A stretch of 64,000 nt of DNA. It comes from Heteronotia binoei (Eukaryota). Below are positions 10,250 to 51,584 of this stretch, piece by piece. The position numbers and the translations under genes are program-made. The number at the start of each line of letters is the position of its first letter. Position 1 is the first letter of the stretch. The stretch covers positions 66,092,001 to 66,156,000 of the forward strand of contig NC_083224.1 in NCBI RefSeq assembly GCF_032191835.1, written 5' to 3'. The notes below the pieces were generated by a model. It did not search any database. It was not told where the DNA came from and was given only the letters and a program-made list of their open reading frames with translations.

Positions 10250-12503
10250 TGTGTGATTGCTGAAGATTCTGAGTTTGTGGTTGCTGGGGAACTGCTGTTT
10301 GTTTGGTTTGAGTGGGCTGAAGGTGATTGTTGCTGATGAGCCTTTGGCGCGAGCCGAAGGGAGAGAGCTAAAGGGCTCTTGGCCTGGGGGCTGTGTAAGG
10401 ACTAGGAACCCAGATCCCTATTTTTCTTGTGTTCCCAATAAGATAAGTAGACCCTCCAGAAGGAGAGCCACATAAACAAGATTTAAAAAGGGAATGCATA
10501 TTTTAAAAAAGCTATCATGAAGGTAAAATGCCAGCAGGGGGTTGAGGGCTTTCTAGTGTTTTGCACTGAGTGTCACATGTGTGTGCTTGATGCAGAGCTC
10601 CTGGTCCTCAGGGAATGAGTTTGTACCCTTGAGGCCAAAGTGACTGACCTGGAGAAGCTGTTACTTTTCTACCGGGTAATGGATCAGAGTTGTCCACTGA
10701 GATAGTGACAAACAGTATGGAGTGTCTGCCAAAGTCTCGAGGCAGCAGGATGAAGGTTGTGGGCCTAACTTGCCTGAGAGATTATAGATGTTTGTACACA
10801 AATGCTAGAAGTGTTCAAAATAAAACTGGTGAGTTGTAATGTTTAGTGTTGGGGGAAAACATTGACATTGTGGGAATTTCAGAAACTTGGTGGAATGAGG
10901 AGAATCAGTGGGACACGGTGATTCCTGGATTTAAGTTATATTGAAAGGATAGGGAGGGAAGGGTTGGAGGTGGGGTGGCTCTATATGTCAGAGGGGATAT
11001 ACAGTCCAGTAAGGCTGAGGTCAGAGAATTAGATTCCCTTCTAGAAATGCTTTGGGTTGAAATAGAGTGCCCAAAAGGAAATTTAACTATGGGAATTTGT
11101 TATTGCCCACCAAATCAAAAGATAGAGGACGATTACAATATGATGGAAGGATTAAAGATAGTGGCTAAACGTAAAAACTGTGTCGTCATAGGTGATTTTA
11201 ACTACCCGCAGATTGAATGGGTCAATAGAGAGAAAGAGATTGAGTTTCTAGATGCTCTCAATGACTGTGCTATGGAGCAGATGGTCACAGAACCTACCAG
11301 GGGTGGGGCGATCCTGGGTTTGGTCCTAAGTAATGCCAAAGATTTGGTGAGAGATGTAAAAATGATCGCACCGCTTGGGAACAGTGACCATAACATTGAT
11401 TTCACCATTTGTATAAATAGGGAGTTGCCCCAAAAGACCAGCACAGCCACATTTAACTTTAAAAGGGGTAAATTCTCTGAGATGAGGAGGCATGTGAAGA
11501 GGAAACTGAAAGGAAAGGTAAATACAGTCAAAACCCTTGGGGAAGCTTGGAGGCTATTTAAAACTACAATCCTAGAAGCTCAGATAAAATATATACCACA
11601 AGTTAGGAAAGGCACAAACAGGTATAAGAAAAGGCCTGCATGGTTAACAAAGTAATGGAAGTTGTAAAAGGTAAGGAGGACTCCTTTAAGTGGTGGAAAG
11701 CTAGTCCAAGTGAGATTAATAAAAGGGAACACAGGCTGTGGCAAATCAAATGCAAGATTGTGATCAGGCAGGCAAAAAGGAACAAAAAACATAAAGACTA
11801 ACAATAAATATAAAGTCTAACAATTAAAATTTCTTCAAATATATTAGAAGCAGGAAACCAGCCAGGGAGGAAGTGGGGCCCTTGGATGACCATGGGGTAA
11901 AAGGATTACTGAAGGAGGATAGGGAAATGGCTGAGAAGCTGAATGCATTTTTTTGCCTCATAAGAACATAAGAGAAGTCATGTTGGATCAGGCCAATGGC
12001 CTCTGTCTTCGCTGTGGAAGATGAGAAGTGTTTGCCTGCTCCGGAACCACTAATTTTGGAAGGGGTGTTGAAAGACCTGAGTCAGATTGAGGTGACAAGA
12101 GAGGAGGTCCTACAACTGATTGACGAATTAAAAACTAATAAGTCACCAGGTCTGGATGGCATACATCCAAGAGTTCTGAAAGAACTCAAAGTTGAACTTG
12201 TGGATCTCCTGACAAAAATATGTAATCTTTCATTGAAATCTGCCTCTGTTCCTGAGGACTGGAAGGTAGCAAATGTTACCCCCATCTTTAAAAAGGGTTC
12301 CAGAGGAGATCCGGGAAATTACAGGCCACTCAGTCTGACTTCAACACTGGGAAAGTTGGTAGAAACCATTATCAAGGACAGAATGAGTAGGCACATTGAT
12401 GAACAAAAGTTATTGAGGAAGACTCAGCATGGGTTCTGTAAGGGAAGATCTTGCCTCACTAATCTGTTACAGTTCTTTGAGGGGGTGAATAAACATGTGG
12501 GCA
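10250..12503 (+). mobile_element. CR1 LINE, 5' portion (ORF1 remnant, endonuclease, start of RT); decayed
   Basis: ORF1-like VFCTECHM at ~10555. ORF2 CLYTNARSVQNK, GDFNYP, SDH, then PGNYRPLSLTS...SCLTNLLQFFEGVNKHVG, stopping at the DIRS junction. 5' boundary approximate. Confidence 0.9.
11960..11998 (-). mobile_element. 39-bp extremely truncated CR1 3'-end insertion inside CR1 ORF2
   Basis: ATAAGAACATAAGAGAAGTCATGTTGGATCAGGCCAATG flanked by GCCTC repeats (11955-11959, 11999-12003). Removal restores FFASVF. Confidence 0.75.
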
Positions 12504-12540
12504 AACGGAAGATTCTATTCACTTACCGTGAAAGTCTTCC

Positions 12541-12653
12541 TTCTCTGTGGTCCCGGAGTGGTCGTCCTCACTCTTGGGATCATAGCTCCTCCTCTTCGAT
12601 TGCAGGGCCTAACAAACTTTGACCCGAAGGGGAGGTGCTTGATCCTCAGAAGT
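12541..12653. repeat. DIRS #1 3' ITR (12504-12540 is the 3' extension)
   Basis: Near-identical to the reverse complement of 18183-18297, differing mainly in the outer ~25 bp. Confidence 0.9.
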
Positions 12654-13030: not shown

Positions 13031-14177
13031 TCAGCTTTGTCCCGAAACCATGTGTTGGAGTACCTTTCTCCCAAACGCAGCCTCAGCCGAGGCCGCCTTA
13101 TCAATCCTGTAGTGTTTAGTGAAGGAGTGCACTGACTTCCATTGCGCCGCCTTACACACTACCTCCAGAGAAGGAAAAGCCCTATAGGCCGCTGAAGTAG
13201 CTGTCCCTCTAAGGGAATGGGCTGTCACCCCTCTTGGGGGCTCCAACCCTTTCGCCTTGTAAGCCTCATAAATGCATCCCCTAATCCATCTACTAATGGT
13301 AGACGCTGATACTTTCCTTCCGTTATTGGAAACCCTGAAGGAGACAAACAAAGAGTCCGACTGACGAAACCCCTTGGTTCTGTCCAAGTAGAAACTAAGG
13401 GCTCTACGGACATCCAAACAGTGCCACAACTTCTCTTTCCCATGAGTTGGATTAGGGCAGAAGGAAGGAAGCACAATGTCCTCTGCTCTATGGAAGCGCG
13501 AGTTTACCTTTGGAATGAAGGCTGGATCAGTGCGTAGCACAACCTTGTCCTGATGAAAAACGCAGAGATCCCTATGTATGGAAAGAGCCTTAAGCTCTGA
13601 CACCCTATGTGTCGAGGTGATGCCACCTTGCCACTAAGAACGCCACCTTGAATGTCAGCAACTTAAGGCTACACGATGCCATGGGCTCAAAGGGCTTGCC
13701 ACAGAGTGCCTTCAGCACCGTGTTCAGATTCCAAGAGGGGAGCCTATGAACCTGCGGTGGATTAACCAAAGCAACCCCTTTTAGGAACCTTCTGATATGT
13801 GGGTGTTTAGAGATAGACTTGCCCTTCCTTGACCCTCTAACTGCTGCTATAGCTGCTACCTGTCTGCGCAGGGTACTGGTGCTGAGACCTTTTTCAAGCC
13901 CTTCTTGTAGAAAGGATAAGATAAAGGGGACCGAAACCCGTAAAGGGTCTTCCCCCCTCTTCTCACACCAAGCATGAAAAACCTGCCAAGTGATATTATA
14001 GCTTCTATTGGTGGAAGTCTCTCTGGAAGACAACATTGTGTCTATTACAGGAGTAGAATAACCCAGATGGGTCAACTGCTGCCGCTCAATCTCCAAGCAG
14101 TGAGCTGCAGCATTTCTGGTTGCGGATGATGCAGCATGCCCTGAGACAGAAGATCCCCTCTTGGAGGAATCCACCAC
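13031..14177 (-). pseudogene. DIRS #1 tyrosine recombinase (frameshifted near 13604-13630)
   Basis: N-terminal SSRETSTNRSYNITWQVFHAWC. The catalytic RVSEL is separated by small indels. AHSLRG and FTKHY lie in ORF 13031..13603. Confidence 0.9.
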
Positions 14178-15912
14178 GGCTCCAGTATTGACATACTCTG
14201 AAGTTCCTGGAACCAGGCTCTCCTAAGCCAAAAGGGGGCCACCACAATCGCTTCCGCTTTTTGTTCCTGCACCCTCTGCAGAAACCTCCGTATGATCTGG
14301 AATGGAGGAAAGGCGTATAGTAGAGTCTTCGGCCAGTCTGAGTTCAGAGCGTCGATAGCCACCGCTCCTCTGCTTCTTGTCCTTGAGAAATACTGGGACA
14401 CCTTGTGATTGCTGTCTGAGGCAAAAAGATCCACTCCCGGTGTCCCGAATCTTTGGCAAATTTCTCGAAAGGTCTCGTGATGAATTGGCCATTCTGACTG
14501 GTCCAGTGATTGTCGATTCAGCCAGTCCGCTACTACATTGTCCTTTCCTGTCACGTGAGTGGCTTTGATGGATTGAAGATGGACTTCTGCCCATCTGAAC
14601 AACATCTGTGCTTTGTCCTGAAGCTTCCAGTACCTGGTGCCTCCTTGACGATTCACATAGGCCTTTGCCGTCATATTGTCTGTTTGTATCAACACGTGAG
14701 TCCCGACCACCCCTTTTTCATTTGAAGCAAAGCCTGACGTATGGCTCTTAATTCCAGGAGATTTATACTTTCTTTGGCCTCTTGAATGCTCCACTGACCT
14801 TGCGCTACAGCTCCTCTCGTGTGAGCTCCCCAGCCAAAAAGGCTGGCATCTGTGGTCAGCACTACTCTCTTGGGTTCCCGCAGCTCCTGCCCCAAGGAGA
14901 AAAGTTCGGAAGCCTGCCACCACTCGAGGTCTTTTAGCAGCTTGGCTGATAGTGTCAGTGAGATCGAACTCTTGATACTTATCTGCTTCTGGAACGGTAA
15001 AAGGAATTTCTGGAGTGGTCTCGTGTGGAACCGTGCCCACTGAACTACATTCTGGCATGATACCATCATTCCCATCAACTTTGCTAGTAGCATCAGCTTG
15101 ACTCGCTTCTGCTGTTTGACTTCCGTGATCAGCTGTAAGATTTTTGACTGTCTTTCTGGAGTCAGAAAAACCCTGTCCTTGTTGGAGTCGATCTGAACCC
15201 CTAGGTGTATTAGAACCTGGGAAGGTTGTAGCCAACTCTTCTGGACATTTATAACGAACCCGTGCGAACTGAGGGTTCTCATAGTCAACTCGAGGTCTCT
15301 TCTTGTCTGTTCCGCCGACGGGGCCTTGACCAGAATGTCGTCCAGATATGGAAAAAGGGACACCCCCTGTAGTCTCAGGACGGTCACCAGAGTGACTAAG
15401 ACTTTTGTAAACACTCTGGGAGATGACTTTAGACCAAAAGGCAAGGCCCTGTATTGGTAATGACTCCCGTCGTAGGCAAAACGGAGAAACCTGCGATGTT
15501 CCTTGGCGATGGAGATATGAAGGTAGGCTTCCGACAGGTCTATGGATGCCATGAAGTCTGCCCGCTGAATTGCCAGTAGAATGGACTTCAGAGTCTCCAT
15601 CCAAAACTTTTTTGTTACGACCGACTTGTTCACCCACTTCAGATCCAATATCGCCCGAACGTCCCCGTTCTTTTTGGGAACCCCGAAGAAGACTGAATAA
15701 GTGCCTTGAAATTTTTCTATTGTAGGAACCGTTTCGATGGCTCCTATCGCCAGCAAATGGTCTATGGCTAGTAAAAGTGTTCGATGTTTCTCAGGAGATT
15801 GAGATTTTTGTACTTCTAGGAAACTGTGTACTGGAAGCGAATAAAATTCCATAGAGTAACTGTTGGTAACTGTGTCCAAGACCCATTGGTCTGATACCGT
15901 TTGGTGCCACAC
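14072..15912 (-). pseudogene. DIRS #1 RT-RNase H-methyltransferase-like ORF (one frameshift near 14700)
   Basis: IDLSEAYLH, LPFGL, YLDD, TDASLFGWGA, INLLELRA. Continues in the next frame as TDNMTAKAYVNRQGGT...DLFAS...YAFPPF. Confidence 0.92.
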
Positions 15913-16043
15913 ATGGGAGAATCTCTGAAGTCGTCCTCCTATCCGACTTGGAGCTAGAGGACCCTCCCAGTCATGCTGATGTAGGCTTCTTTTGTCCTTT
16001 AACTGGTTGACTTTGTTTCCCCCCGAAGGAAGTCCTGGTGTCT

Positions 16044-17333
16044 CTAGACTTTGACTGCCACTTTGTCCTGAATGGCTTGAAGGAGGTTTGCCTGGAATCT
16101 CTCCGATTTCCTTTGCCTTGACCTGTTATCCCATCTCTTGCAAGGCAGGACTTTTTTCTTGTTCCTGTCCTCAATAAGATATCTATCCAGGCCTTCTCCA
16201 GAGAGTGAAGTCTCTTTAAATGGAACTGCGGCCACTTTAGCCCTGGCTGAAGGATCCGGATCCCAGTTATGCAGCCACGTATTCCTTCTGGCCGTGACGC
16301 TAGAGGCCATGGCTCTGGCTGATAGTTGAACTGCTTCAAGGGTAGAGTCTGAAGCAAAGGCGGTGGCCAACATAATTTTCTTAAGCGAGTCCTTAACGTC
16401 CTTCGGTAGGTCATCCCGCTTAGCCAAGTCAGATAACCACATATATGAAGCCCTACAATAAAGAGATGTGGTGGCCGACACCTTCAAAGAATTAGACGAG
16501 GCTTCAAAATCCCGACGTAAAGCTTGCTCTATACGCTTGTCTGTCAAATCCCTTGGCATCCCATCCGCATCCATTGGGAGCATGGAATTGGAGGCCAGAC
16601 TATTGACCAGTTCATCTACCACTGGTAACTTCAGCCTCTTGGTTGCCTCTGGGATGAATGAAAAGAACTTAGAGAAATTTGATGAAACTGTCTTTGGCTT
16701 GGCTGGATGTTCCCACTCCGACCTGATTATGGAGAAAAAACCAGGGGGCAATGGGACCTGCAAGAGTTTGGAACCCAATTTAGGGATGATATCTTCTATT
16801 GCCAAAGGAAACTTTGACTCTTCCTCCTCTTTGTTTTTGGGAGTGTACTGGATCTGAAGTGTCTTAATCACCTTTGGAAGAAGGCGTGAATATACTACTG
16901 CTGGAAAAAGTTTGGAATGAATAGAGGATGCCCCCTCCTCTTCCTCAGACAGTTCTCCGGTGTCTGGGGACGAAGAGCCTTCAGACAAATCAGAGTCCTC
17001 TTCCTCCTGATCAGATGGAAAGGAATGTAACTCTGACCTGCTACGCTTTAGAGATCTGGGAGAGAAATTTTCCTCTTCCTTATCTGCTTCTATGTGTTTG
17101 AGTTTGCGTGCTCTCTTGAGGGGGATGGTGGTGGTGGTCGCAAAAGCTGCCTGAACCTCTTTTCTGACCAGTTCTTGAATCCAAGAAAAAAGATTAGATT
17201 TAGCCTCATCTACTGAGACATCAGCTTGGTGATCTTCTGCCCCCTCTTCCTGTGCTGGTGAGTCAGCCAACTCCAAGTCACAGGTGCCCTCCTCCATTAT
17301 GGCTCCCTTGGGGAATTTGGTGGAGGCGGCCAT
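16044..17333 (-). CDS. DIRS #1 gag-like ORF1 (429 aa from the ATG at 17333; LAP2alpha-like C-terminal region)
   Basis: Open frame with Kozak-context AAGATGG, acidic/Ser-rich middle, and ARAMASSVTARRNTWL...VPFKETSLSGEGL typical of vertebrate DIRS gag. Confidence 0.8.
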   Translation of the reverse strand: MAASTKFPKGAIMEEGTCDLELADSPAQEEGAEDHQADVSVDEAKSNLFSWIQELVRKEVQAAFATTTTIPLKRARKLKHIEADKEEENFSPRSLKRSRSELHSFPSDQEEEDSDLSEGSSSPDTGELSEEEEGASSIHSKLFPAVVYSRLLPKVIKTLQIQYTPKNKEEEESKFPLAIEDIIPKLGSKLLQVPLPPGFFSIIRSEWEHPAKPKTVSSNFSKFFSFIPEATKRLKLPVVDELVNSLASNSMLPMDADGMPRDLTDKRIEQALRRDFEASSNSLKVSATTSLYCRASYMWLSDLAKRDDLPKDVKDSLKKIMLATAFASDSTLEAVQLSARAMASSVTARRNTWLHNWDPDPSARAKVAAVPFKETSLSGEGLDRYLIEDRNKKKVLPCKRWDNRSRQRKSERFQANLLQAIQDKVAVKV

Positions 17334-18182
17334 CTTAGAGTGAATGGCCCTGTAAACACAAGAAGCACAGACAAAATGATTTCCATTCCCACCAAAAGAA
17401 AACAGCCCCTCCAAACAGATGATGTCCCCTTCCCCCCCCACTAGCATAGCACTAGTCTTAATCCCTTTCCCTTTTTCAAAAATTAACCAATGCCATACCA
17501 AAAAAGGGCCATTCTCCTGAGCCCAGGTATAAAAGGGAAAAAGAGGAGGGGGGGGACGCTGGGCATGCAGCTGAATCCTGAAAGGCTCTCAGCGTCCTGC
17601 CTGCTTATATCTGGAAAAAAGGGGCTTCAGGGCTAGGTCTGTAGACCCCCTCTGGTCCCCAGACAAATCCTCCCTCTTAGGATTCCCCCCATGCATGGCT
17701 TACCGCTGCCGGGAAGACAATCGCGCCGAAGGCTCTGTCGTCGGCGCTCCGGGAGGGCTGCATGTCAAACACGAGTCCTCTCCCTGTTAATCTGTCCCTC
17801 CCTCTCTCTTCTTGTTTTTCTTAGCTGCCGTTCCCTAGACCCCCAGGGTTGCCGGAGTGCCTTTGCTGGGAGCGAGAGAAGAGCGATCGCCTGCCCTCAG
17901 AACGTCCATCGGGCGGGAATCAGAGGAGGGAAGAACGGTGCGTGTGCCTCTGCCTGAGGCTACTGAAGCACTCTGCCAGAACGCGGCAGGGAAAAAATCC
18001 TCCCTCGAAAAACACAGCAGCGCTGTTTTCCTCCCGTGCTGGGAGCTTCCAGGCCACTGAACACAGGTAACCTGATCCTTCTTGCTGTGTGTTGATTTTC
18101 TTCTTTTTTTTTTTTACGGGTCAAGAGCCACAAGGGGGCTCTAGAAGCATATCCTGCTTCGATTGCAGGGCTAAACAAAATT

Positions 18183-23031: not shown

Positions 23032-24495
23032 CTAGCTGCTGGTTGGCAACAAGATCTCAATTTCTTTCCCATTGGCTACAACTGCATTGCTTGAACAACT
23101 GCTTGCCAAATCCACAGGTGAGCCCAATGAGGATGACTGAGAAGGAGTTTTAGTTGGTGGGGTGGGAGTGGCTGGAGAAGGAGCCAGTCCAGGTTTCTTT
23201 GGAGGTATTGGTGGAGGGTTTCCTCTTTCTGCTCTGGGAATGGTTGGTGATTTAATTCCTGGCGATAAAGGACTTAATGGGCTTGAGACCTTGCCTTGGC
23301 TTGACTCGTTCTTGGGGCTCATGGCACTGGCCAGGTTTCGGTAGTCTGTGCCAAAAGGTGAGCTGTTAGGAGAGACTGGTTTGATAGGGCCTTGCTGACT
23401 GGTGAACCTGGAGAGGACCTGAGTGACTGTATTGCGGGCAAGCTGCTTAGCGGCAGAATTATCAACAAGGGTGGGTGACAGATCCCTGGGTGGAGGGCTC
23501 TGGAGACCACTTGACTGGTGATCCTGATCCGCTTGGGACTGAAATTTGTGACGAGCAGCATGGAAGCGCTGATTGATTCCGACTTGGTAGGAAGATTGAT
23601 AGCCGGGACTGTTGGCTGAAGTGCCTATCAAACGTTTGGTCATAACTGGGGAAGAGCAAGGAGAGGAAGTCAAAGATGAAGAACCCGTGTTGCTGGGGGA
23701 TAAGGATATCCCACTGGAAGGGAGCGATGAAACACCAGAGGCAAGCGATTCTGTTCTTAGAGGGGAGCTACTGCTTTCTACAGCATTCTCTACAGCTGAT
23801 CCTGCAGGCTTTGCTCTTTGCAGGCTCTCCATGCTGATCTCAGCTGGTTCCACACTTGTCTGCATAGCATCACAATGCCCATTTATCTTGGCATAAGGGT
23901 AGGCAGCTGTGGCAGAGGGGGAAGTTAACAAGTGCACTAATTTGCCTGTACTTGCCTGGCTAGCATTCTCTGCCAATAGACTTTCTGTCTGGCAAGCTAC
24001 TGACATAACAGAAGAACATTCTGTGGCAGTTGCTACAGACACCACTGAGATATGGGATGGCATGCTCTCAGCTTGGTTGCTACTTTCTTTGTTAGTCGCC
24101 TCTAGCTGCTTCAGGGTTTTCTTCAAATTCTCTACTTCTTCCTTCAGAGCCTTGGTGCGGTTCTCTTCCCGGTTCAGCTTGGCTCTTAACTGTTCTCTTT
24201 CAATGTCAAATTCAGACAGCTGCTTCTCTACTTGTGCCTCTATTTGCAAACCCCTCTTCTTCTTAGCTGCCAGCTCCTCCTCCATTTGGCTCACTTTGCT
24301 TCTTTCTTTCTCCAGTTTCAAGTTCAGTTCCTCAACCTGCTTCCCTTCCTCTGCAGCTTTGGCTGTGGCTTTCTTGCACTCCAGCACAAGCATGGAAGAA
24401 AGCTGCTTGTGGTGTGCACGTTCCTCCTCCAGCTGACCAGACAGCTTCTTTTGCTCTCTCTCAAATTTCTTCACTTGGGACTTCTCAAATTCCAG
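23032..24495 (-). CDS. CTTNBP2NL: CTTNBP2 N-terminal-like protein, last coding exon (487 aa + TAG)
   Basis: Acceptor TCTTCTCTCCTAG|CTGGAATTT. LEFEKSQVKKFEREQKKL...INQRFHAARHKFQ...PPPIPPKKP...ILLPTSS matches vertebrate CTTNBP2NL as recalled. Confidence 0.96.
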   Translation of the reverse strand: MEFEKSQVKKFEREQKKLSGQLEEERAHHKQLSSMLVLECKKATAKAAEEGKQVEELNLKLEKERSKVSQMEEELAAKKKRGLQIEAQVEKQLSEFDIEREQLRAKLNREENRTKALKEEVENLKKTLKQLEATNKESSNQAESMPSHISVVSVATATECSSVMSVACQTESLLAENASQASTGKLVHLLTSPSATAAYPYAKINGHCDAMQTSVEPAEISMESLQRAKPAGSAVENAVESSSSPLRTESLASGVSSLPSSGISLSPSNTGSSSLTSSPCSSPVMTKRLIGTSANSPGYQSSYQVGINQRFHAARHKFQSQADQDHQSSGLQSPPPRDLSPTLVDNSAAKQLARNTVTQVLSRFTSQQGPIKPVSPNSSPFGTDYRNLASAMSPKNESSQGKVSSPLSPLSPGIKSPTIPRAERGNPPPIPPKKPGLAPSPATPTPPTKTPSQSSSLGSPVDLASSCSSNAVVANGKEIEILLPTSS

Positions 24496-28123: not shown

Positions 28124-29696
28124 CTGAAACATATGATCAAATATTGCAAATTATTAACCATTAAGTACCAAAGAGAAGAGAAAAACCAAATGCAGGATAA
28201 AATTCAATCACAAGATAAATTCAATCACAGGATAAAATTCAGCCACAATCACAAGAGTGGACAGATGAAAACCCCCAACATAACTACTAAGGCTCACAGC
28301 TATGACTGTGGAGGATGGTTTTGCCAAAACGCCAGCCAAACAAAAATGAAGTCAATTTAGTACATAAAACCCACCCATAATTAAGCCATTTCATTCAACA
28401 TCTATTGAGTTGGACGGAAAGACAAGAAGTGGAAGACAATGAAAGGAAGAAGCAGAACATCTAGAAAAGAAATATGAAGGAAGCAGGGGTATGAGAAGAA
28501 GTGGCTAGTACAAATGAGAAAAGAAGCAGCATTGGTTAGAGCAAGGGGATGTAAAGTGATCTAGGGACAGGGAGAAAAGCATAAACTAGAATTAGCCTTC
28601 ATATTCAATTTGGGCAACTAGCCTTTCTTCTATGGATTCCGCTAACTGCAAATGTGAAGACATAACTGCAATTATATACTTGTGTCTTCACATTTCCCTA
28701 ACAGGAAACACTTTTCAGGAAAGGGAAATTCAGCTTCAAAAAGCAGGTCTGTAGCATTTTAATTACAGCCAAAAGTAACCATAATACAAAAAGAAGCCTT
28801 TCATCTAAAGCATACACTGTGTTTACTTATGATCAGTGATAAATATCTCAAGATCAAACAGTTGCTGTTACAGAATTATTCCCTTTTCCAATTTAATATT
28901 TTATTGAAATTTTCAGGTATATAAGTTTAAAAAGAACTCAGAAAAAGACAAACCCACCACCACCACCATCAAAAAATAGAAAAAAAAGGAATATATGGAG
29001 AAACATATCTCTACAGTTTAACCAAATCCAAGAAATATCTTGGCTGCAGAGCAAAATACATAGTCCAACTTATTCCTGCTTGGCCCCACAGCCCTGCAGA
29101 GCTCAGGTAATTTCTGTGTGAATTACAAAAATGTCTACGTTCTATCAAGTCCACTCGCTCAGATCCTTGTCACATGTGGTCATCCTCCACACATTAAATA
29201 CAGTCAGGGTGTCCTGATACTTAAGCATTATTACTGGAAAGACAGTGAATGAGTTTGCAAACACATGCTCTTCTTCAGAAAAGAGTACAACTATAGACAT
29301 TTTAATTGTTTTAATGATGTAGATTGAGGGGAATTATTGTTATGGTTTTATAATTAATTTTATCATGTAGAGATGTAACTCTAACAGAATTTTATTTCTT
29401 TTAAAAGTTGGAGTGCAACATTGTCTCACTCATATTGTTACTACTAGATAATACAATTATAAAAACAGAGAAGGCTGTTATGGCTACAATGGTATCTTTG
29501 TACAATCTGTACATTATGAAATCCATGTGGTGCCCACATGGACTGAACAGATCTGTGCCAAGAGTCCTACCCCGGGAGTTGGGGCCTGATTTGGATTGGG
29601 ACCAAAAAGGAAAACAGGCTTAAGCATCCCACTACACTTTCCTAACCTAAAATGGCCCCATGAGTTGCTATTTTCTTCTTCTTTTTTTTTTTTTTT

Positions 29697-29849
29697 CAAA
29701 GGAAATGTATTTTATTGGTCTGAATTCAAAGCATGTGACAGCTTTCAAACATTGCAGGGTTCTTGTTTTCAGACAGAATTGGATGCTTTCAGATGCAGCC
29801 TGATCCTATGAATTGAAAGCTCTATGAGCCCCAAATCACCAGGATTTGC
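29697..29849 (-). other. 153-bp putative 3'-transduced sequence between two poly(A) tracts
   Basis: A15 at 29850-29864 (AATAAA 29884-29889) and A15 at 29682-29696 (AATAAA 29711-29716), both inside the TSD. Confidence 0.8.
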
Positions 29850-30086
29850 TTTTTTTTTTTTTTTGAACTTTATATATTCATCATTTATTGAAATTAGTAT
29901 ATGTAACAGATCCATAGTAATAATAAATATTTAACAATTAAACAAACAAAAAATTACGTAGTTCACAATTATCCACTCATCCAGCACCCTGTGACCCGTC
30001 ACCCTTGTTGCCCATACTTATCTATCTCTGCCTATTGTATGCCTAGTACTTGATATAGCTCTCTGGACCACCTTGGCCCCCACAGC

Positions 30087-33000
30087 CTAGAGGGAACTAT
30101 GTTCAAATTCACATCCCGGACCCTGTAAATTATTGACAGCCGCCAAAAACGGTGCCCAAATGTCCTCGAATTGTTGTTGTTGCATCATTCGTCGGTAGAC
30201 CAGCCTTTCATCCACCGCCAATCGCAGCATGTCCTCCAGCCATTGCGCTACGGTTCCTGAAAATTCCGTTCTCCACATCTGCATGATTATCCTCTTTGCC
30301 GTCATCAGTGCCCGAAATCCCCAATATCGCTGTGGGCGAGACAACACCCATGCTGACGGGAAGTGGTTTAAAAGAACTTGCATGGCTGTGAATCTGTGCT
30401 GACTTCCCAATACGCGGTTTATCCACCTGAGTATATCGCCCCAGAAATCAAGCAGCACCGGGCATGACCAAATCATGTGGCTTAGCCCCGCTTCACCTCC
30501 CTGGCATCGCCAACATGCCGGTGAAGTCAAGAGGTTAAATTTGTGTAGTCGAACAGGTGTCCAGTAAATACGGAAATGAATTTTTTGCTGAATTAATATC
30601 AAGCGTTGATCTTTAGAAACTTTTCGGATCGCCCTGTTGATTGTGAACCATTGGAATGGTAGAATACTAAGGTTCAGTTCATCTGCCCATTTTACCCGTA
30701 ATTCTTCAATTAGCTGTTGTTGTTGCGTCCCATATCGAAAGTACGTGTACAGGGCTTGCACTGGATTATCTTGCTGCCATGTCCGCCTTAATACAGCTAA
30801 AAGGGATGGTGGATCAGGGGCAGCCAAGGCATCCGGACCCAGCAGCTGCGTCAGCGCCGTCTTTATTTGGTAATAATGTAGCCATTGGTTAGATTCAAGA
30901 TTATACTTGTCTTGAAGCTCCTTAAATGTCCAGAATTCTTCTCTATTTGGGTCTCGTAGATGATCAAGAGTTGTTATCCCTTTTTCAATCCAACCCTTCC
31001 AGACCACTTGGCACCCTCCAATCCTCAATTCTGGGTTTCCCCAAAGAGTCATTGATCCATGTAAGAAGGCGTTAAAGCCTTGCTTGGTACCTATTAGCTG
31101 CCATAATCGCCTGGTGGCCTGAATTGCTGGAAGCAATACTTCCCCTTGGTAGTGCTTCGAACCCAAAACCTCTAGCGTAGAAAGAGGGGCCACTGTTGAA
31201 GCCTCGAGAGCCACCCAGTCTGGAGATTCCTTCCCTACATCTTGCCTCCACTTACTAACACTTGCCAACATATAGGCCCTATGGTATACACTTAAGTCTG
31301 GCATACCAAAGCCACCTTGATCAATTGGGAGCTGGAGCCTAGCCAAGGACAGTCGCGGCCTTTTCCCTTCCCACAAGAAGTTTGTTATTAGAGTATTGAC
31401 TCTTTTAAACCACTTCTGCGGAATATACTGATGGAGACCTCGGAGAACATAAAAGAAGCGGGGGAATGTAACCATCTTAAGGGCATTCACTTTACCCCAC
31501 AATGACAATGGGATGGGTTTCCATCGGGTGAAGTCAGCTTGTGTTTTCTCCAGGAGCTTTCTAAAATTCATCCCCACTAAGTTTTGACTTCGATTGGGAA
31601 TTTGTATTCCTAAGTATTGAATCGAGTCCTCCTGAAGTCTAAACCGCCTTCCAACTGCCTCAGGAATCTTCTTACCGCCCACTTGGAGTACCTCAGTTTT
31701 CCCCCAATTCACTTTGTAGCCTGCAAGTTGGCCGAATTCTTCAGTAAGCTTAATAATTGCTGGAAAAGAGGACTCTGGCTCAGTCACCATCAAAAGGGCG
31801 TCGTCTGCATATAACAGAATTTTAAATTCGCTGAGACCGTGCTTCATACCATATATGTTCGTCCTTTGGCGCACCGCCTGGGCGAGAGGCTCAATGCAGA
31901 TGTTGAACAGGAGTGGGGAAAGCGGACACCCCTGTCTTGTGCCGCATGCCAGATCGACTACTCCAGACTGCTCTCCATTGACTCTAATTCTCGAGGTCGC
32001 ATTCTGATATATCAACTGGGTCCACCGAAGGAATTCTTCCGGAAAGCCCAGGTATGTCATCGTCTTCCTCAGGAACCCTCTGTCCACACGATCAAATGCC
32101 TTCTCAGCATCAATAGAGATTAGAAACGCAGATTCCGGCTTCTCATTATAAGTGGCTATTAAGTCAGTAATTAACCGAACATTATCAGCTCCCGAGCGAC
32201 CTCGGATAAAGCCTGCTTGAGCTCTGTTCACCACCGAAGCTATTACTGATTGAAGGCGTTGTGCTAATATAGCCGTCAGTATCTTGTTGTCAACATTTAA
32301 CAAGGATATTGGGCGATAGCTTGAACAGAGATATGCGGGCTTCCCCGGTTTAAGAATCAGTGTAATCCAAGCCGCATTAAATTCTTTTGAAGGCATACCT
32401 TTGTCAAAAATTGCTTGATATGTCTTCAGCAACTTAGGAGCTAAGATATCCCTGAATCGGAAATACCAGACCGGAGAGTACCCATCTGGCCCTGGGGCTG
32501 AACCATGTCGAAGTGATTCTAATGCAGCCGTTACCTCATCCAATCTTAGGGGAGCTGAGAGGATCCTTTGAGCCTCTTCCGACAGTTGTGGTAAGTCAAG
32601 TTGACGTATAAAGGCGTCCTGTTTGTCATCTACCTCTTTAACATGACCCTTGTACAGCTCTTGGTAAAAGAGGCGAAACTGGTCTGCTATTCCAGAAGGT
32701 GTAGCATGAACGCCTCCCCTGTCATCACTAATCTGAGTTACCCATCTCTCTTCCTGTTGGCCCTTTAACCTTGAGGCTAATATTTTCCCCTGCCTTTAGC
32801 CGAACTCCCAATACTGGTGTTTTATCTGGGCATATATAAGTTCAGACTTGCGCGACTTGAGCAAATTCAGTTGAAAAGTTAACTGTTGAATTTCCGTGTA
32901 GAGGGCTGGAGACAGATTCTGAAAGTGCTTTTCCCATAGGTCTTTAATTAACATCTCTAGCTCTTCCTCCCGTTGGGCTCGTTCTCGTTTCTTTGCTGTG

Positions 33001-33899
33001 GCATACGCAATTATACGACCTCTCATCACTGCTTTAAATGCTTCCCAAATGGTTAAGTAGTGGTCCACCGATCCTTCATTACTCTGGAAGAACTGTGGAA
33101 TCTCCTTTTCCATCTGCGCACAAAAAACTGGATCATTAACTAGTGAGTTATTAAAGTACCATGTAGCCTTCTTCTCAATCCGATTTCTCATATCCAGTTC
33201 CATGGTAACAGCATGGTGATCCGAGAAGGAAAATGGGCAGATTTGGGAATTTGTGACCAGGTGAAACCTTGACCTCGAAATCAGAAAGTAGTCAATCCTT
33301 GCCATACTCTGGTGGACGTGCGAGTAGTGAGTAAACCCTTTTTGGTCTTTATGCTGTTCTCTCCACACGTCTACCAAGCCTAACTCCTTCATTGCTGCTG
33401 TTAGCGCTGCCCAAGCCCTTGGGGACCTTAGATCTGACTTGGTGCTTCGATCTTTTTCATTATCTAGGACTAAGTTAAAATCTCCGCCCATAATTATCCA
33501 TTCGAAATCCACTTTCATTAGAATAGAGACCACATCCTTAATAATGGCAGGATCATCCTTATTTGATCCATAAAAATTTACCAAGGCAACCTTTTGTCCA
33601 TACATTAAGCCGCTTAGAACAATGTAGCGTCCCTGGGGATCAGAAATCTTCATTAAGTTACTCCAGCCCAAGCGTCCACGAATAATTATTGCGACACCGC
33701 GAGCATTCCTCTCATATCCTGAAGTGTAGACCTGGTCACCTTGGAATTTAGCCAGCAAGGAGCTTTCATTGTCCAAAATATGAGACTCTTGGATTAATAC
33801 TATGTCCGCATTCCAAAGGACCTGAGTCCTTAAAACCGTTGCTCTCTTCTTAGGGTCTCTGAGGCCGCGTGCATTAAGCGATGCTACTTTAACTGACAT
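30087..33899 (-). pseudogene. L1 ORF2p (APE endonuclease-RT-CCHC), 1271 codons with one in-frame TAA at 32796-32798
   Basis: ORFs 32796..33899 and 30087..32543 are in the same frame, and manual translation of 32795-32541 shows no other stop. Motifs GDFN, SDH, QGCPLSP, YADD, CWRC...H...C. Confidence 0.95.
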
Positions 33900-35395
33900 C
33901 TTAGTTCAACCTCTGGTCGTTCGGCCAGGGGCCAGAGAGCAATCCTCCTCCTCCCATACCATCTTGGCAATGCTACTACACCCCGTGTATAAGTCCCCTC
34001 CATGGCGAACCTACGCCCTGGAGGGTAACTTCCCCCACCTATTCTTCCAACTTCCATGTTAGAATCCAGAACAAAGCAAAAAAATTTAAAAAAGGCAATC
34101 GCCCCGGGCTAAAAAACCCCCATTAATCTACTCAATTCATAGAGATCAGTAGTCTCTCTTTGGTCTGTACTGTAACAAATTCTAGGGTCCCTAATAGACC
34201 TCTATGGGCCCATCTCCATCCTACTTAATCACCTAGTACACAGACAAATTGAATCTCCTCATTCCCTTCAACATCCAGCCATGCCAGTACAAAGTTTATC
34301 CTGAAATTAACATCCTGCAAATTCCCTTGTTTCACACATCTTGCCCTCAACTCCTCCTGGCTCTTGCATTAAGCTGATATAAGGTTTGTATTCCGTTTAT
34401 ATGAGCTAACCAACCCTAAATAGCCTGCTTTTCCCTTTACATTCTCTTCAAGACTTGCATAGCCTTGTCTTATCATTAATTAATTATCATTAATTAACTA
34501 GTATTTCTAGAATAACCATTGGGCATATATCATTGAAGGTCTCTTCTGCCTAGCCTCCAGCACATGGTTGACAACCAAATCTACATAAGTAATTCAAAGA
34601 AATAATTCATCTATAGCACAGACCTAATAAACAATAATCACAAACTGAATTATTTCCCACTTGCCATCCATTAATCAATCAGTGTTGGTAAGTTACTGGG
34701 TTAAAGACTTCGCATCATTAACAACCCAGCTGGAGAGTGCATTCAGGATTACCTTCAAAAGCATAATTGCAAACAATTGCCATGGTGGGATTCATGTAAA
34801 CAGATCCTCTATAAGCCTTTAAAATTACGCAGCCACCCAATTCAGAGTTGAACCCTTCTTACGTTAATCAGGACTTCATAAACGGAGGGATAATCAGGTG
34901 CCCAGGAAACTATAAATTACATTCCTTTAACCAGACCAAGCAAATAGGGTTTTAGGTCACCACGTCATTAGTTATTGTCCCCCTGATATTAATACAGATC
35001 CAACATGGAAACCCCAGGTGGAATATGTCCAGGGTCCTAGCAGGTCTTGTATATAGAAGAAGCCAGATCACCTAGTCAACTTAATGCAAAGGGGGAAAAA
35101 AAAAGAAAAACTTTATTTTAGTGTCTTCCACCTTAGCACTTAGAAAGAACTTAGAAACAGCGTGAAGGAAAACCATTATAAGGACACATGCGAGGGGGGT
35201 GAGGGGGGCTATTATCTGCATTCAGTATAGGGTATCCAACAGGAAAAAGGACACGGGGAAAGCTGAGAAAAGACCAAAGGGTTTTGAGTAGTGGGGATAG
35301 TAAGCAAGAAGGAAAGAAAGAAGGAAAAAGAAACAACCACCACCCGGCTTTAATTGCAAGAATCCAAAGACTGTCCATGCTTCACGGCGCAAGCC

Positions 35396-36283
35396 TCAAG
35401 TGTCCATCGTTCCTGGTACAGTCTCTCCTTCAATAGCACGTAGATAGTCTTCTGCACTTTGTGGGGTGTGAAATAGGACTCTTCTGCCATTGCGAATCAG
35501 CACCAGTGTAGACGGAAAAAGGATAAAGTTCTCCACCTTTAATTTCCGAGCTAATTCCTTGGCTGTCTTATATGCACGACGCTTTTGAATTATTGCAATT
35601 GGGAGATCTGGGTAAAGTGAAAAAGAGGCTGGTTGGCCCTGCCAGAAAATGCCCTCCCCCATGGATAATTCCCGGAACTTGCGTAGGACGAAATCACGCG
35701 TAGACACACGTACAAAAGAGATCAGCAGCGTGGATCTTATTAACCCTTCTGGGCCTGGTCTGATAAGTCGCACCACGTCAGCAATTTCTAAAGGGAACTC
35801 CACTGGGAGCTTAAGGATATGGTGGAAGAAATTGTTTGCAAAATCAACCAGCTCTGCTGGGGCCCGAGCTGTCAAATCTTTAAGTCCTACTAAACGCAGG
35901 TTACAGCGTCGAGACTGCCCCTCTAGAACGTCTACCTTCTCACGCAGGGCAAGGACCTCCTTCCTTGTTTCACCCGCTGCTGTAGCTTGTTCGGCCACTG
36001 TATTTTCTATAGCCACTACTTTCACCTCACACTGCTGCACTCTGTTTAAAGCCTCGGCAGTAATTTGCTGTATCTGCTGCAGCTGCTGAGTTATTTGAAT
36101 CGGGAGAGACTCCATTCGTGCTGATAATGCATCTATTTTCTTCTCTAGCTTCTCCAATGAGGAGCCCTCTGATACAGAAGCTACCTCAGCCATTAGAGTC
36201 TCCTCTTCACCCTCAGAGTCGTCTTCTGCCCCCCTTCTACCCCGTGTATCCTTCTTTCTTTTTTGCTGTAGTCTTGGAAGCAT
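35396..36283 (-). CDS. L1 ORF1p (295 aa from ATG 36283; coiled coil-RRM-CTD)
   Basis: Basic N-terminus MLPRLQQKRKK, heptad region, LEGQSRRCNLRLVGL, LYPDL...KRRAY, FILFPSTL. Confidence 0.92.
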   Translation of the reverse strand: MLPRLQQKRKKDTRGRRGAEDDSEGEEETLMAEVASVSEGSSLEKLEKKIDALSARMESLPIQITQQLQQIQQITAEALNRVQQCEVKVVAIENTVAEQATAAGETRKEVLALREKVDVLEGQSRRCNLRLVGLKDLTARAPAELVDFANNFFHHILKLPVEFPLEIADVVRLIRPGPEGLIRSTLLISFVRVSTRDFVLRKFRELSMGEGIFWQGQPASFSLYPDLPIAIIQKRRAYKTAKELARKLKVENFILFPSTLVLIRNGRRVLFHTPQSAEDYLRAIEGETVPGTMDT

Positions 36284-36289
36284 CAGCTG

Positions 36290-36715
36290 TAAAGGAGGGA
36301 GGGAACGTGCCGTGCAAGCGTGGGGAAATCTCCAGTCCTGGCAGCTTAGCCCAAACAAAGTTCAGAAGGAGACTTAACCCCACTGTTCACCAGGTCTTAC
36401 GATGACAAACAGGAAAATTTAATTCACTTATCTGTCCAAAACCGCTCTAATTGCCAAAAACTTCCCGAGCTCTTTTACTGTAGTTTTGAAGGCTTCGGCT
36501 TCGGCTGTGAAGGAGGGGGGGAGGGGGGAAACCTGCCGTATAAGTGTAGGAAATTCTTCGCTCCTGGCAGCTTAGCCCACACAAAGTTCAGAAGGAGACT
36601 TAACCCCACTGTTCACCAGGTCTTGCAATAACAAACAAGAAAATTTAGTTCACTTATCTGTCCATAAATCACTCTAATTAGCAAAAAAAAAAAAAACGCC
36701 CGGAGCTTCCACCAG
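36290..36715 (-). repeat. Two ~220-bp tandem monomers in the L1 5' UTR
   Basis: ~36295-36473 and ~36511-36715 share CCTGGCAGCTTAGCCCA.ACAAAGTTCAGAAGGAGACTTAACCCCACTGTTCACCAGGTCTT...TTCACTTATCTGTCCA. Confidence 0.9.
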
Positions 36716-38046
36716 CCGCGTCGTCTCACACCATTCCGGAAACAGGAAGTGAGTTGCTATTTTCTTCTTTGGTTCATATAAACTTACTCAAGGGAACAAA
36801 CAGTGGCTCTCTGGGGCCATTTCTTTTGGGGAAAACAGTGCAGGGGGAGGCTTTAAGTTCTTTCTCCCTGTATGGCCATGGTATGATCCAAACCAGGCCT
36901 ATGTGCATCAGGGAACCAGGCACATAACTGACTCCTTGAGGTAGCCACAAACCCTTTGTAATGTGTTCCCTCAAAAACTCATTTTCTATTTAAGTAACAT
37001 AGGCTAATTATATGCTTGTTTGCAATTTGAGCAATGCTGAATTTAAGTTAATTAGAACACTATCTTTGTTATTCCAGCTCAGGGCTGATTCACACATTTA
37101 CAATGTCTGTGCACTTCTGCTTCCAGCACTGCACTTGCAGTAGGTACATGCTGCCAGTTTATTTGCTGAACAGCAATACATGATGCAGTCTCAGCTTGAA
37201 AACCAATGAAAATTCTTTAATCCCATGACTACTCTGAGAAATCTATTATAGAATCTCTCCTCTTGTTCACTCCACATAAAAGCTTTCCACATACAAAACA
37301 GTCCCAGTTTACCAAATGAATCACATGTCTTGAACTAGAGACAGCACCATTTGCTTGCTGTAGGATGAGAACACTGAATCTCATTCAGAATCATTCACTA
37401 CAGAACAACAAGGTATTTAATGAATGTTTTCTGTAATTTGAGAGAGGAAAAATACCCCAGGAAATTTAAGGAGTGAAATAATGCTCGCCTAATCTCAGTC
37501 CAAATAAATACTATGTGAAATAGTAGTGCAGTTTTACTAGTAAATTTAATTCCAGTCTGGATAGTTAGATTGCTGATCCATCGCATATTCATCTGTGAAA
37601 GGACTCAAATAGGCAGAAACAATAATTGTGCAGATTACTTCACACAAAAGCAGTACACTAATTCTCATGTGACCATTTGTTTCTCCAAAGTCTATTCTTA
37701 ACTAACTCAAGAACACCACAGAACCATTAGGGGTTGGTTTTTCTCCTGAGTTTACAGTGCCAATTCAAAATAAGCTTGAATGTGACCTGACTGAATATAT
37801 TTTGACTACCATCTAAATCTGAGTAGAACAAAGCTATTTGTTCAGAAATAATTGTTACTAAGTTACCTCACAGTGGGCTTTCTTGAATCAGTGGTGGTGG
37901 GGAATCATTTCACTCTGAACTGTGCTCAAAGCTTCTCCTACATAAGTCACAAGTATTTTTATTGGGACAATTCTGAACGGTCTTGAACTATGTAGTAAAA
38001 TGAAATACTGGGCACTTACCATGAAGGTTCCTACTACCTTGCACTA

Positions 38047-47236: not shown

Positions 47237-47427
47237 TGACTGGCAAGCTTATCTGTCTGGAGGCGGGTGCTGGATCTGTAACCAAAGGACAAGGTTAGGT
47301 ATGCATATAAGAAGCAATAGTGTACTTACAGTGTAGACGACTGGAGACATCAGTTGAAAAGAATAAGATTTTCTGGTGGCAGGTTTTTTGGCATTGAGTA
47401 AGACATGACGTACGTCCGAAGGAAAAT

Positions 47428-49260
47428 TCAGAAACTGATTTTCCAGGCAATCAGTCGTAGAAGTCCCAGATTGTGGTGCAAAACCTTGCTTTCTTGTTGG
47501 GAAATCAAGTCCTGAACTTGAGGAAGTCGGAGGAACGTGCTGTCCGAGAGGAGGAGGAGAGTGGTGAACCAAGGTTGACGGGGCCACCACGGTGTAATCA
47601 GGATGCAATTGGTCCGATCTAGCTTTATCTTTTGCAATACTCTCGTGATGAGAGGAATTGGTGGAAATAGATAATGTAGTATCCCGGACCATTGATGGAG
47701 GAAGGCGTCCCCCGCAGACAGTGGGGATGGAGGACCCTGAGTGTAAAAGTGCGGACACTGGGCGTTGTCTGGAGATGCAAATACATCTACTTTCGGAACT
47801 CCGAAGGTCTCAAACACGGCGTGCAGGTAAAGACGGTTGAGGGCCCATTCGTGATCTTTGACTAGATGACGACTCAGTGTGTCTGCTTGGACGTTTTGGA
47901 CTCCTGGCAGATGCACCGCTGTCAGGAAGATGCCAGTGCCATAAGGATAGGGCTCATTTGCACAGACGAACAGAGGCTGTGCCTCCCTGCCAATTGATGC
48001 AGAAAACAGTGGCTACATTGTTGGAGGTGACCTGAATGTGGCAATTGTGAAGAGACAGTAGAAAGGATCTCAGAGCTCTGTTGACCGCCAGGAGCTCTAG
48101 GCAATTGATGTGAAGGGATCTCTCATACTCGGTCCACTGTCCCTGAACTGTCAATGTTCCCAAGTGGGCTCCCCATCCCCACTTGGAGGCATCAGTCGTG
48201 ACAATCATAGAGGGCGGTGTTCGTATGAACGGCATTCCGGCCAGGAGATGACGATCCACCGTCCACCATTTTGGAGATGGGATAATGTGAGATGGGACCG
48301 TAAGTAAAGTCATTTGATGTTGCCATTGTGGATTATATGTCCGGACAAACCACAGTTGAAGAGGGCGCATATGAAGTCTTGCAAAATAGAGGACGGCGGT
48401 GGTGGCCGCTATGAGACCTAACATCTGTTGAAAGTTGAAGGCTGTTTGTGTACGGTGCATGATTATGGTATTGGCCAGGGATTGGATATGATGCACTCTG
48501 TCTGCTGGAAGGTAGGTAGGCCTTGTGTGATAGTCAACAGACGTGCCCCTATAAATTGTATGTTCTGAGTGGGATTCAGGTTGGATTTTGCATGATTGAC
48601 CTGAAGACCTAGTGCAGACATGAGGGACAGAGTAGACAAAATGTCCTTCTGAAGTTGTTCTTTTGTTTGAGATACGACCAGCCAATCGTCTATATAAGGG
48701 TAAATGGAGATCTGTTGTTTCCGGAGTATGGCTGCCATCACTGCGATATATTTTGTGAAAATTCTCGGTGCTGTCAAAAGACCGAAGGGGAGAGCGCGGA
48801 ATTGATAGTGTTGATCTCCGATAGCAAACCTGAGGAATCTTCTGTGATGGTGATTGATGGGGAGATGGAAGTAGGCATCTTGTAGGTCTATCGACGCCAT
48901 CCAGGCCTGAGCTGGAATCAGTGGTAGGATAGATTGCAGAGTAATCATGAGGAATTTTTTGTAGCGAATATGGAGGTTGAGTTTTCGAAGATTCAGTATA
49001 GGGCGCTGCCCCCCATCCCTCTTTGGAACCAGAAAATAGCGGGAGTAAAATCCCGTGTGATGGAACTGCGGTAGAACTGGTTCTATAGCTCCCTTGTCCA
49101 GTAAGGCGGCGATTTCCGTTTGAAGTGGAACAGATGGGGGTGTAGGTATGAACCTGTGGAGTTTTGGAGTCGAATTGAATTCTATGATGAAGCCCCTGTG
49201 GATGATCGCCAGGACCCATGAATCCGATGTTATGGATTCCCACATGGGGTAGAATAGTCG
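47428..49260 (-). pseudogene. DIRS #2 RT-RNase H-methyltransferase-like ORF (two frameshifts)
   Basis: IDLQDAYFH, LPFGL, YIDD; TDASKWGWGA, INCLELLA; ADTLSR, DVFAS, YLFPPI, distributed over ORFs 48463..49539, 47954..49243 and 47428..47916. Confidence 0.9.
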
Positions 49261-49315
49261 TAGTCTGGTGGTGTCTGAATGGTGTTGTAACTGATTGAGA
49301 GGTAGGAGAGAGGAG

Positions 49316-51584
49316 TCAAAGAGACTGCTTTGGGGCCGGTGTTGTCTCCTTTGAGGTTTGTGGACGTGCTCTTTGCTGAAATGGTTGTTTTGCTGGAGGA
49401 GCCTTATGTTTCCAGAATTCAGCTTGGCGGGGAGATTGGGAACGTTTGTAGTATGACGGTTTCCAGGTTCTCTGCCGATTAGGTTGGGATTGCTGTTGAG
49501 TAACTCCCAATCTTTTGGCCCTTTCCCTACTGTCATCAACAGTGGTTAAAATATCATCTGTGGTGGCATTAAAGAGACCCTGTCCGTCAAAAGGTAAGTC
49601 CTCTATCTTGAATTTGATGTCAGGTTGCAGTGAAGAGGACCTGAGCCAGGCATGACGGCATAGAGCAATCGATGTAGCCATAGTCCTAGATGAGCATGCA
49701 CAGCATGTCACACTGTATTAATTTGTTGCTTGCTGACATGAGAGAGCTCCTGAAGGATGTGCGAAGCCTGCTTCTGTGCTGCATACGGTAGGGAGGGGAC
49801 CAAGGTATTAAGTTGGGAGGTCAGATTGAAAGCATATGCCGAAAAATAGGCCAAATAATTGTGAATTTTGGAAGTAGCAGTGGTAAGCGAATAGATCTTT
49901 CTTCCTAGAGTGTCCAATTTCTTCCCTTCCTTTTCAAGCGGGACCGGGTGTCGTGTTTGTTTGGATTTTGAGGATGAATGAATGATCATGGAATTTGGTG
50001 CCGGATGATTTAAGAGAAATTTTGATTCAGGAGCATGAATTTTGTAGAGGGATTCAACTCGTTTAGATGTCAGTGGCACTGAAGCGGGTTTGTCCCATGC
50101 CTCTTTCAAGGTTTCCAAGTGAACTGGAAGCATCGGGAGAGAAGAGCCTGCTGGCAGGTCTGCATGTACCAAATCATGGACTACATCCGAAACTCTAGGT
50201 GCGTCAGTAGTTAGTTTAATATTGAGTGAATTTGCCATGTTGGATAGTAAATCTAGGTAAGATTTAGAACCCTCTGAGGGTGAGAGGTCAGCAGGTTTGA
50301 TGATGTCAGAAGCTGGTGAAGGAGGAGCTGAGGCTGTAGAATGGGGGAATCTGACTGTTCCGCTTCAGATTCTTCCTGAGTTTCAATGGGTGTATCAATG
50401 GGCTTGGTAGGCATTGATATCTGTTTGGTCAATAGGGGAGGCTGTTCCACCTGTTGCTTAGGAGAGACTGAGCACACCGAAGTCAATCTAGCTGGAGACA
50501 CTGGTTTTGATACCATAGTGTAATGCTTAGGGCGTTGATAGGGACTTTCATGGGGTCGATAAGACATGTCCTCACGGTACCGAGGACGATCCTCATGGTA
50601 TATGTGCTCCCGATGTGTAGGATGATAAACCACCTCACGGTACTGAGGGTCTTCACGGTACCGATACCGATGGGAATCCGAGGAAGGTAATCTATAATAT
50701 CGTTGGTACCTGCGAGGAGATGGTGATCTGGACCGCGATGGGCTATAATAGTAATAGCGTTCCCTATGATGACTTCGAGATCTCTCGGCTCGGACCCAAG
50801 TGGATGGCTCTCTCGGTGTCGAGGGTTCTCTTAAGAGTGGAGATGCGGGTGTCGCTATCTGTTGCTTGCTAGGCGTCTACTAGGCATTGAAACTTCCCGG
50901 AAGGAGTGTGCGGCGAGAAGGTTAGCACGCTGACTTCTGTGTGATTCTGGAGATTCGGTGTCAAGGATATTTTCTGGCAAAGACCCATGAAGTGATGGGG
51001 GCTGAGAATGGATATGGACGACCTCGAGAGGTACAGTATCGATGGATGCCGAGACCTCCAATGAAGTCGGTGCTGTCTGTATCGAGGCCGAAGTACAAAC
51101 AGTCGGGTGCGATGTAGAAGTCATGGTGGGAGACTTCGAATCCGAGGACCTATGGCCTGTCTTAGATTTGGTCTTCGGTGGATGTCGAAACCGAAGGGTC
51201 TATAGAAGTCGATTCTGCGCGATGTTTCTTTCTAGAATCGTCACACTTCTTTGAGTGTTTCTCGAACTTAAGCTTGCTGGGAACCGAAGCCATGGAAGCT
51301 GCTGGTCGAGCCACTTCCTTTTGAGTAGATAGGGAAGATGGCGAGGTTTGGGATCCCGAAGTATGGGACATAGTAGGGCGCAGTGACAACGCCAACAAAT
51401 GACTTCTGAGTCTAGCCGCGTGGTTTTTTCTTGCTTGCTTTCCAAATTGACTACAATGCAGGTAAGTGTTGGTGAGATGGGCCTCACCCAGACAAAAAAG
51501 GCATAAAGAATGTCCGTCTGTGGATGGGATTTTTGAGGCGCACCTAACACACTTCTTAAAAGTGATTTTGTCTTTCCCTTCCAT
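49316..51584 (-). pseudogene. DIRS #2 gag-like ORF1 (fragmented)
   Basis: ATG 51584, Cys/His cluster FKKCVRC...CLFCLGEAH, RS/RY-rich middle, LAP2alpha-like RTMATSIALCRHAWL...DLPFDGQGLF. Confidence 0.85.

Follow-up and report, generated by a model that had tools for sequence, protein, structure and literature searches.

A nearly intact gecko L1 with a 153-bp 3′ tag, probably acquired by 3′ transduction, upstream of a CTTNBP2 N-terminal-like exon

The insertion and its host gene

The stretch of the Heteronotia binoei genome analyzed here, hereafter the window (64,000 nucleotides of contig NC_083224.1), contains part of a CTTNBP2 N-terminal-like gene, a large coding exon, and, 5.2 kb upstream of this exon, an L1 retrotransposon in sense orientation followed by a short segment of different origin, the tag (Table 1). 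The exon was recognized from the end of a CortBP2 domain in its ORF (E = 6.6e-4, below the Pfam cut-off) and from language-model features, which gave a value of 0.98 against the cluster "CTTNBP2 N-terminal family protein". An earlier note on this DNA had placed the insertion in a CTTNBP2NL intron, and the position of the exon, downstream and on the same strand, is consistent with this.

Table 1. Features of the insertion and of its host gene (positions in the window; sequences in element orientation).
Feature	Position	Strand	Description	Basis
Large coding exon, CTTNBP2 N-terminal-like gene	23032-24474	minus	480-codon ORF	CortBP2 and language-model features
Target-site duplication (TSD), copy at the 3′ end	29661-29680	minus	AAGAAGAAAATAGCAACTCA (TGAGTTGCTATTTTCTTCTT on the plus strand)	Exact direct repeat
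L1 + tag insertion	29681-36749	minus	7,069 bp	Flanked by perfect 20-bp TSD
Second A15, terminal tail of the composite insertion	29682-29696	minus	Then a single G at 29681	
Non-L1 tag	29697-29849	minus	153 bp, 40% GC	Without similarity to L1 or window
Second AATAAA, within the tag	29716-29711	minus	14 nt before the second tail	
First A15, original tail of the L1, in internal position	29850-29864	minus		Sequence reading and A-run scan
First poly(A) signal AATAAA	29889-29884	minus	Then 19 nt, then A15	
L1 3′ UTR	29865-30086	minus	222 bp, 36% GC, AT-rich	Organism A contigs ~96% identical, ending at the A-run
ORF2	30087-33899	minus	1,271 codons	Exo_endo_phos and RVT_1
Non-coding spacer between ORF1 and ORF2	33900-35395	minus	~1.5 kb	ORF listing
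Probable ORF1	35396-36193	minus	265 codons from first ATG, plus stop	Position and size
L1 5′ UTR	36194-36749	minus	Starts CTTCCTGTTTCCGG; tandem units and T14 run	
TSD, copy at the L1 5′ end	36750-36769	minus	AAGAAGAAAATAGCAACTCA; directly precedes the first base of the L1	

The L1 is full length and nearly intact. Its ORF2 encodes, in one frame, an APE-type endonuclease (Exo_endo_phos, E = 1.7e-10) followed by a reverse transcriptase (RVT_1, E = 2.3e-42), and translation of the full frame over 3.8 kb revealed exactly one in-frame stop, at 32796-32798. This domain order, an upstream ORF, a poly(A) tail and a TSD of the variable-length kind at an A-rich site are all characters of the L1 clade. 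Pfam analysis of the upstream ORF yielded no family above threshold and weak coiled-coil-type matches only; judged by its position and size, it is most likely ORF1. The spacer between the two frames contains no ORF of at least 100 amino acids on the L1 strand and no obvious nested element.

To find sibling copies, the reverse transcriptase part of ORF2 (818 amino acids) was compared with a collection of 5.8 billion proteins. The nearest proteins, mostly ORF2 of fish L1 elements, were 30-36% identical, and since the best relatives reach only 36%, the gecko L1 family is without representation in the collection searched. An exact-protein look-up of the 367-amino-acid endonuclease ORF gave no match, and neither the 1,476-nt L1 contig of sequencing run X6 nor the other contigs matching the element, all of which break within the 3′ UTR, appeared among the ORF2 protein search matches.

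The 5′ UTR carries two tandem units of ~226 bp each, whose cores (36520-36667 and 36294-36441) are ~86-87% alike, and a T14 run at 36683-36696. These units are much like the monomers of mouse L1. The segment at 36294-36749 (minus strand) also includes a partial third unit. This monomeric organization contrasts with a survey of vertebrate L1 elements, in which tandem duplication was found in none of the Anolis L1 5′ UTRs (PMC5381506). At its 5′ terminus, the gecko element is similar to the conserved ACTTCCGG-type L1 start that the same survey reports from lizards and fish (PMC5381506).

Given the flawless TSD, the pure A-runs and the near-intact ORF2, the element is a copy of recent origin, and its family is active or was so until recently.

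Two poly(A) modules within one target-site duplication

The direct-repeat search found a single long repeat, which pairs the 20 nucleotides beyond the second tail with the 20 nucleotides preceding the L1 5′ terminus. The two copies are identical at 20/20 positions, so that all 40 duplication bases are unchanged, and we estimate the chance of a 20-mer repeat in this 9.5-kb stretch at ~4e-5. The duplication starts with AAGAAGAAAA, an A-rich target site as used by elements of the L1 clade. In the same search, the sequence that follows the first A-run was not found repeated near the L1 5′ end; the duplication therefore encloses the L1 together with the tag.

Between the two copies lie two AATAAA + A15 modules separated by 153 bp, an arrangement that the earlier note had described and that proved correct to the base on the minus strand. 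The spacing from signal to tail is canonical in both modules (19 and 14 nt), and each A15 run is directly followed by a G in the minus-strand reading. Scanning both strands of the whole window revealed five A-runs of at least 12 nucleotides, two of which, the pair at the L1 end, have an AATAAA 20-25 nt upstream.

The insertion thus shows every defining anatomical feature of a 3′ transduction that was tested. First, the L1 retains its own AATAAA and A-tract internally. Secondly, the extra segment is unlike L1 and ends with a second signal and tail. Thirdly, one TSD surrounds L1 and tag, and none lies between them.

When the tag, which starts with GCAAATCC in element orientation, was compared with the 64-kb window, nothing matched it significantly, the L1 included. 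Neither the tag nor the L1 3′ UTR recurs in the window, and hence no source or sibling of the insertion lies within these 64 kb. No Rfam family was matched over 29300-30300, which rules out a piece derived from snRNA, tRNA, 5S or 7SL RNA. With respect to coding potential, the one open frame of the tag, 26 codons long, is not significant.

The family 3′ terminus in contigs of organism A

To determine whether the tag belongs to the usual 3′ end of the family, we turned to contigs of other samples. An exact-pattern scan of metagenome contigs gave no match to a 25-mer of the tag or to a 29-mer of the L1 3′ end, and in an index of sequencing runs there was no good holder of the stretch, small shares only. 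Contigs of four runs were aligned to 29400-30600 at a minimum of 80% identity. They come from two sources, here called organisms A and B.

Organism A, possibly another species, is represented by two data sets, one of DNA contigs, which is small, and one from an RNA library, with contigs dominated by repeats. These cover the L1 from 29871 to 30600, mostly at 95-99% identity, with depths of 7-46 on the L1 3′ UTR. At the 80% threshold, none of them lies on the tag (29697-29849). One contig (record 1, 226 nt, ~96% identical) matches 29871-30076 and has 21 unaligned letters; as this is exactly the distance across 29850-29870, the contig ends in the first A-run. Contigs break where copies diverge, and the A-run, at 15 nt, is shorter than the 31-letter words of the run index.

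The ending of the organism A contigs at the first A-run, with none on the tag, argues against the tag being the usual 3′ UTR of the family. The pattern indicates that in this family the first tail is where copies end, with tag-bearing ones rare at best. On these limited data, small contig sets possibly from another species, the tag probably lies outside the family's normal 3′ UTR. The possibility that would have undone the proposal of the earlier note, namely that the tag is simply the normal 3′ UTR, was thus examined and not borne out.

A contig from the RNA library of organism A (record 12), which represents a sibling lineage of the gecko L1, departs from this copy at 29912 and shows no relation to it beyond that point (29885-29912). 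There are therefore two or more unrelated versions of the last ~50 nt of the family's 3′ UTR.

Relatives of the tag in organism B

Organism B, a second species, is represented by ~2.7 Gb of contigs in each run; these runs are apparently Hi-C libraries, since GATCGATC stands at the end of one contig. At a minimum of 80% identity, its contigs gave one 38-nt match to the L1, at the end of ORF2. No match was obtained to the L1 3′ UTR, nor to the 261 bp of intron flank compared (29400-29660).

The tag, in turn, was found in two or three organism B contigs at 87-98% identity, each running into unlike sequence. The best match spans 29708-29774 with 1 mismatch in 67 positions (98.5%) and includes the AATAAA. 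The others cover 29770-29839 (7/70 mismatches) and 29742-29836 (12/95 mismatches). The segments 29664-29707 and 29840-29870 were masked as repeats, so that the ends of these matches need not be the ends of homology. With only two or three contigs, each with unlike flanks, the relatives of the tag fit low-copy, non-L1 DNA rather than an abundant SINE or LINE.

Two of these contigs stop matching at 29770-29774, where they overlap by 5 nt (GTCTG), and a third is colinear across this point. An exon junction at this position, which would make the tag a spliced RNA, was considered and rejected: GT fits only register 0 and AG only register 1, and the loose ends are 30 letters long. Judging from these short loose ends, the 5-nt overlap fits better with a 5-bp target duplication, left by an insertion in the organism B copy, than with an exon junction. 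The loose-end sequences gave no match in the window. The tag thus appears to be colinear genomic DNA, not spliced RNA.

Organism B shares neither the L1 3′ UTR nor the compared 261-bp flank, and the 67 nt that are 98.5% identical therefore suggest that the tag may be a conserved 3′ end of a gene.

Origin of the tag

A single L1 retrotransposition carrying a 3′ transduction is the best reading of the locus, and we consider it probable. A progenitor L1 of the same family, located elsewhere in the gecko genome, would have been transcribed past its own AATAAA and its genomic A-tail. The transcript would have extended 153 nt into the downstream flank, to be cleaved and polyadenylated at the next AATAAA. 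This read-through RNA would then have been inserted by target-primed reverse transcription into the CTTNBP2NL-like intron, in sense orientation, creating the 20-bp TSD around L1 and tag.

The earlier note had proposed this same reading. Its anatomical part stands, as do the non-L1 nature of the tag and its place outside the usual 3′ UTR; from them we infer that read-through took place and that a progenitor locus exists. By the same reasoning, the tag would identify the parent locus and the L1 family would be able to shuffle genomic sequence, as the earlier note had claimed.

Background frequencies favor this reading: read-through transduction accompanies about one in ten to one in five young human L1 insertions, whereas a second hit in the 15-nt tail of so young an element and a template-switch chimera are both less frequent than transduction by orders of magnitude. 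Some points speak against it. As a source context, an active 7-kb L1 located 153 bp upstream of a conserved gene end is less likely, and bypass of the L1's own signal, a canonical AATAAA, is not forced. The conserved 67 nt also make an mRNA origin of the tag more thinkable. That the tag represents the end of a cellular gene's 3′ UTR, conserved and with its poly(A) module, which the L1 copied in sense orientation into an intron of a different gene, strikes us as rather unlikely. If true, it would document for a squamate that L1 can shuffle a polyadenylation module, and the CTTNBP2NL-like transcript might terminate prematurely.

Taken alone, the anatomy is also compatible with a second retroposition into the A-tail, the all-A duplication of which would be invisible. 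The L1 would have inserted first with its 20-bp TSD, and a short 5′-truncated retrocopy, made up of a tail and the terminal 153 nt of either an mRNA or some other poly(A) retroposon, would later have entered the L1 tail in the same orientation. A-tails are preferred targets of the L1 endonuclease, the orientation is the expected one, and the two A-runs, both 15 long and each followed by a G, would fit the duplication of an A(n)G target. The tag also ends in a proper poly(A) signal, with its terminal 67 nt highly conserved in organism B, as in the 3′ end of an mRNA. Against these points stands the youth of the L1, with 40/40 TSD bases unchanged, pure tails and one ORF2 stop in 3.8 kb, which leaves little time for a second hit in a target of 15-30 nt. 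The low copy number of the tag in organism B and its absence from organism A contigs show that it is not an abundant retroposon, and processed-pseudogene fragments are rarer still. In addition, the tail of the new element would need to be very short for both runs to measure 15. We therefore regard two successive events as unlikely.

Still less likely is that the tag belongs to the 3′ UTR of an L1 sub-lineage, as an old, inherited acquisition with an internal A-run, already present in the direct parent, that would mark no flank. The 3′ terminus of the family is variable, as the divergence of the RNA-library contig at 29912 illustrates, and L1 3′ UTRs are often replaced (PMC5381506). However, no organism A contig lies on the tag in spite of the depth reached on the L1 3′ UTR, and the one contig reaching the A-run goes no further, even though the index words are longer than this run of 15 nt. 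Even if this were true, the origin of the lineage would still be a transduction.

A template-switch chimera would have formed in one event, by reverse transcription starting at the poly(A) of a cellular RNA, copying 153 nt and jumping to the 3′ end of the poly(A) of the L1 RNA to copy the whole L1. It would account for one TSD enclosing two parts of like orientation, both RNA-derived and poly(A)-ended, and the U6 chimeras of Anolis document such switching by LINE reverse transcriptases for lizards (PMC4476161). Its prior is very low, however, no T-rich microhomology is present at the switch point, where the tag begins, and the order of the parts is reversed, which together make it the least probable of the origins weighed here.

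Comparison with known systems

The closest counterpart is the 3′ transduction of mammalian L1, reportedly described by Moran et al. in 1999 and by Goodier et al. and Pickeral et al. in 2000, the last of these being cited in PMC5381506. The gecko insertion has the same L1 signal and A-tract, non-L1 segment, second signal and tail within one TSD, and the 153 bp of its tag are within the usual length range. It differs in its host, a gecko, and in an ORF2 that is at most ~36% identical to any protein searched. The mechanism is a textbook one, to be expected for any poly(A)-tailed L1; what is new is the host. Our literature search, of incomplete coverage and hence no proof of absence, yielded no squamate example of L1 3′ transduction.

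Tandem retroposon insertions into A-tails are known from primates as Alu-in-Alu or Alu-in-L1 tail arrays. They share with the gecko locus a head-to-tail arrangement of parts in the same orientation, joined at an A-run. They differ from it in two respects: the L1 that hosts the downstream piece in the gecko is very young, and this piece is not recognizable as a high-copy retroposon.

Chimeric retrogenes formed by LINE template switching were reportedly described by Buzdin et al. in 2002 and 2003. Like the gecko insertion, LINE template-switch chimeras combine two RNA-derived parts in one orientation, within one TSD and with a poly(A) end. In those described, the LINE is normally the first template and forms the 3′ part, and a small RNA such as U6 forms the 5′ part (PMC4476161). 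The arrangement in the gecko is the opposite: here the LINE is not the 3′ partner and no small or cellular RNA is the 5′ partner, the L1 being the 5′ partner, complete over 6.9 kb and with its tail, followed by the short fragment on its 3′ side.

If the transduction is confirmed, it shows that L1 elements of squamates, like those of mammals, read past their own poly(A) signal and mobilize flanking DNA. The 153-bp tag would then serve for tracing the active progenitor in the gecko genome, and more generally for studying the dynamics between L1 sources and their offspring in a lineage with many co-existing L1 families. As to the host gene, the insertion brings two sense-oriented AATAAA signals into the intron, with possible premature polyadenylation of the CTTNBP2NL-like transcript.

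Other retroelements in the window

A second non-LTR retrotransposon, fragmented and unrelated to the L1 at 29681-36749, is located at 10975-12622 on the plus strand, with Exo_endo_phos_2 and the start of RVT_1. Two further sets of retroelement ORFs lie on the minus strand. The set at 13031-17501 includes a LAP2alpha-like domain (E = 1.7e-13) and a weak match to a Dam-type methyltransferase (E = 8.9e-6, below the Pfam cut-off), and that at 47249-50238 includes RVT_1 and a weak RNase H match. Both sets are consistent with DIRS elements.
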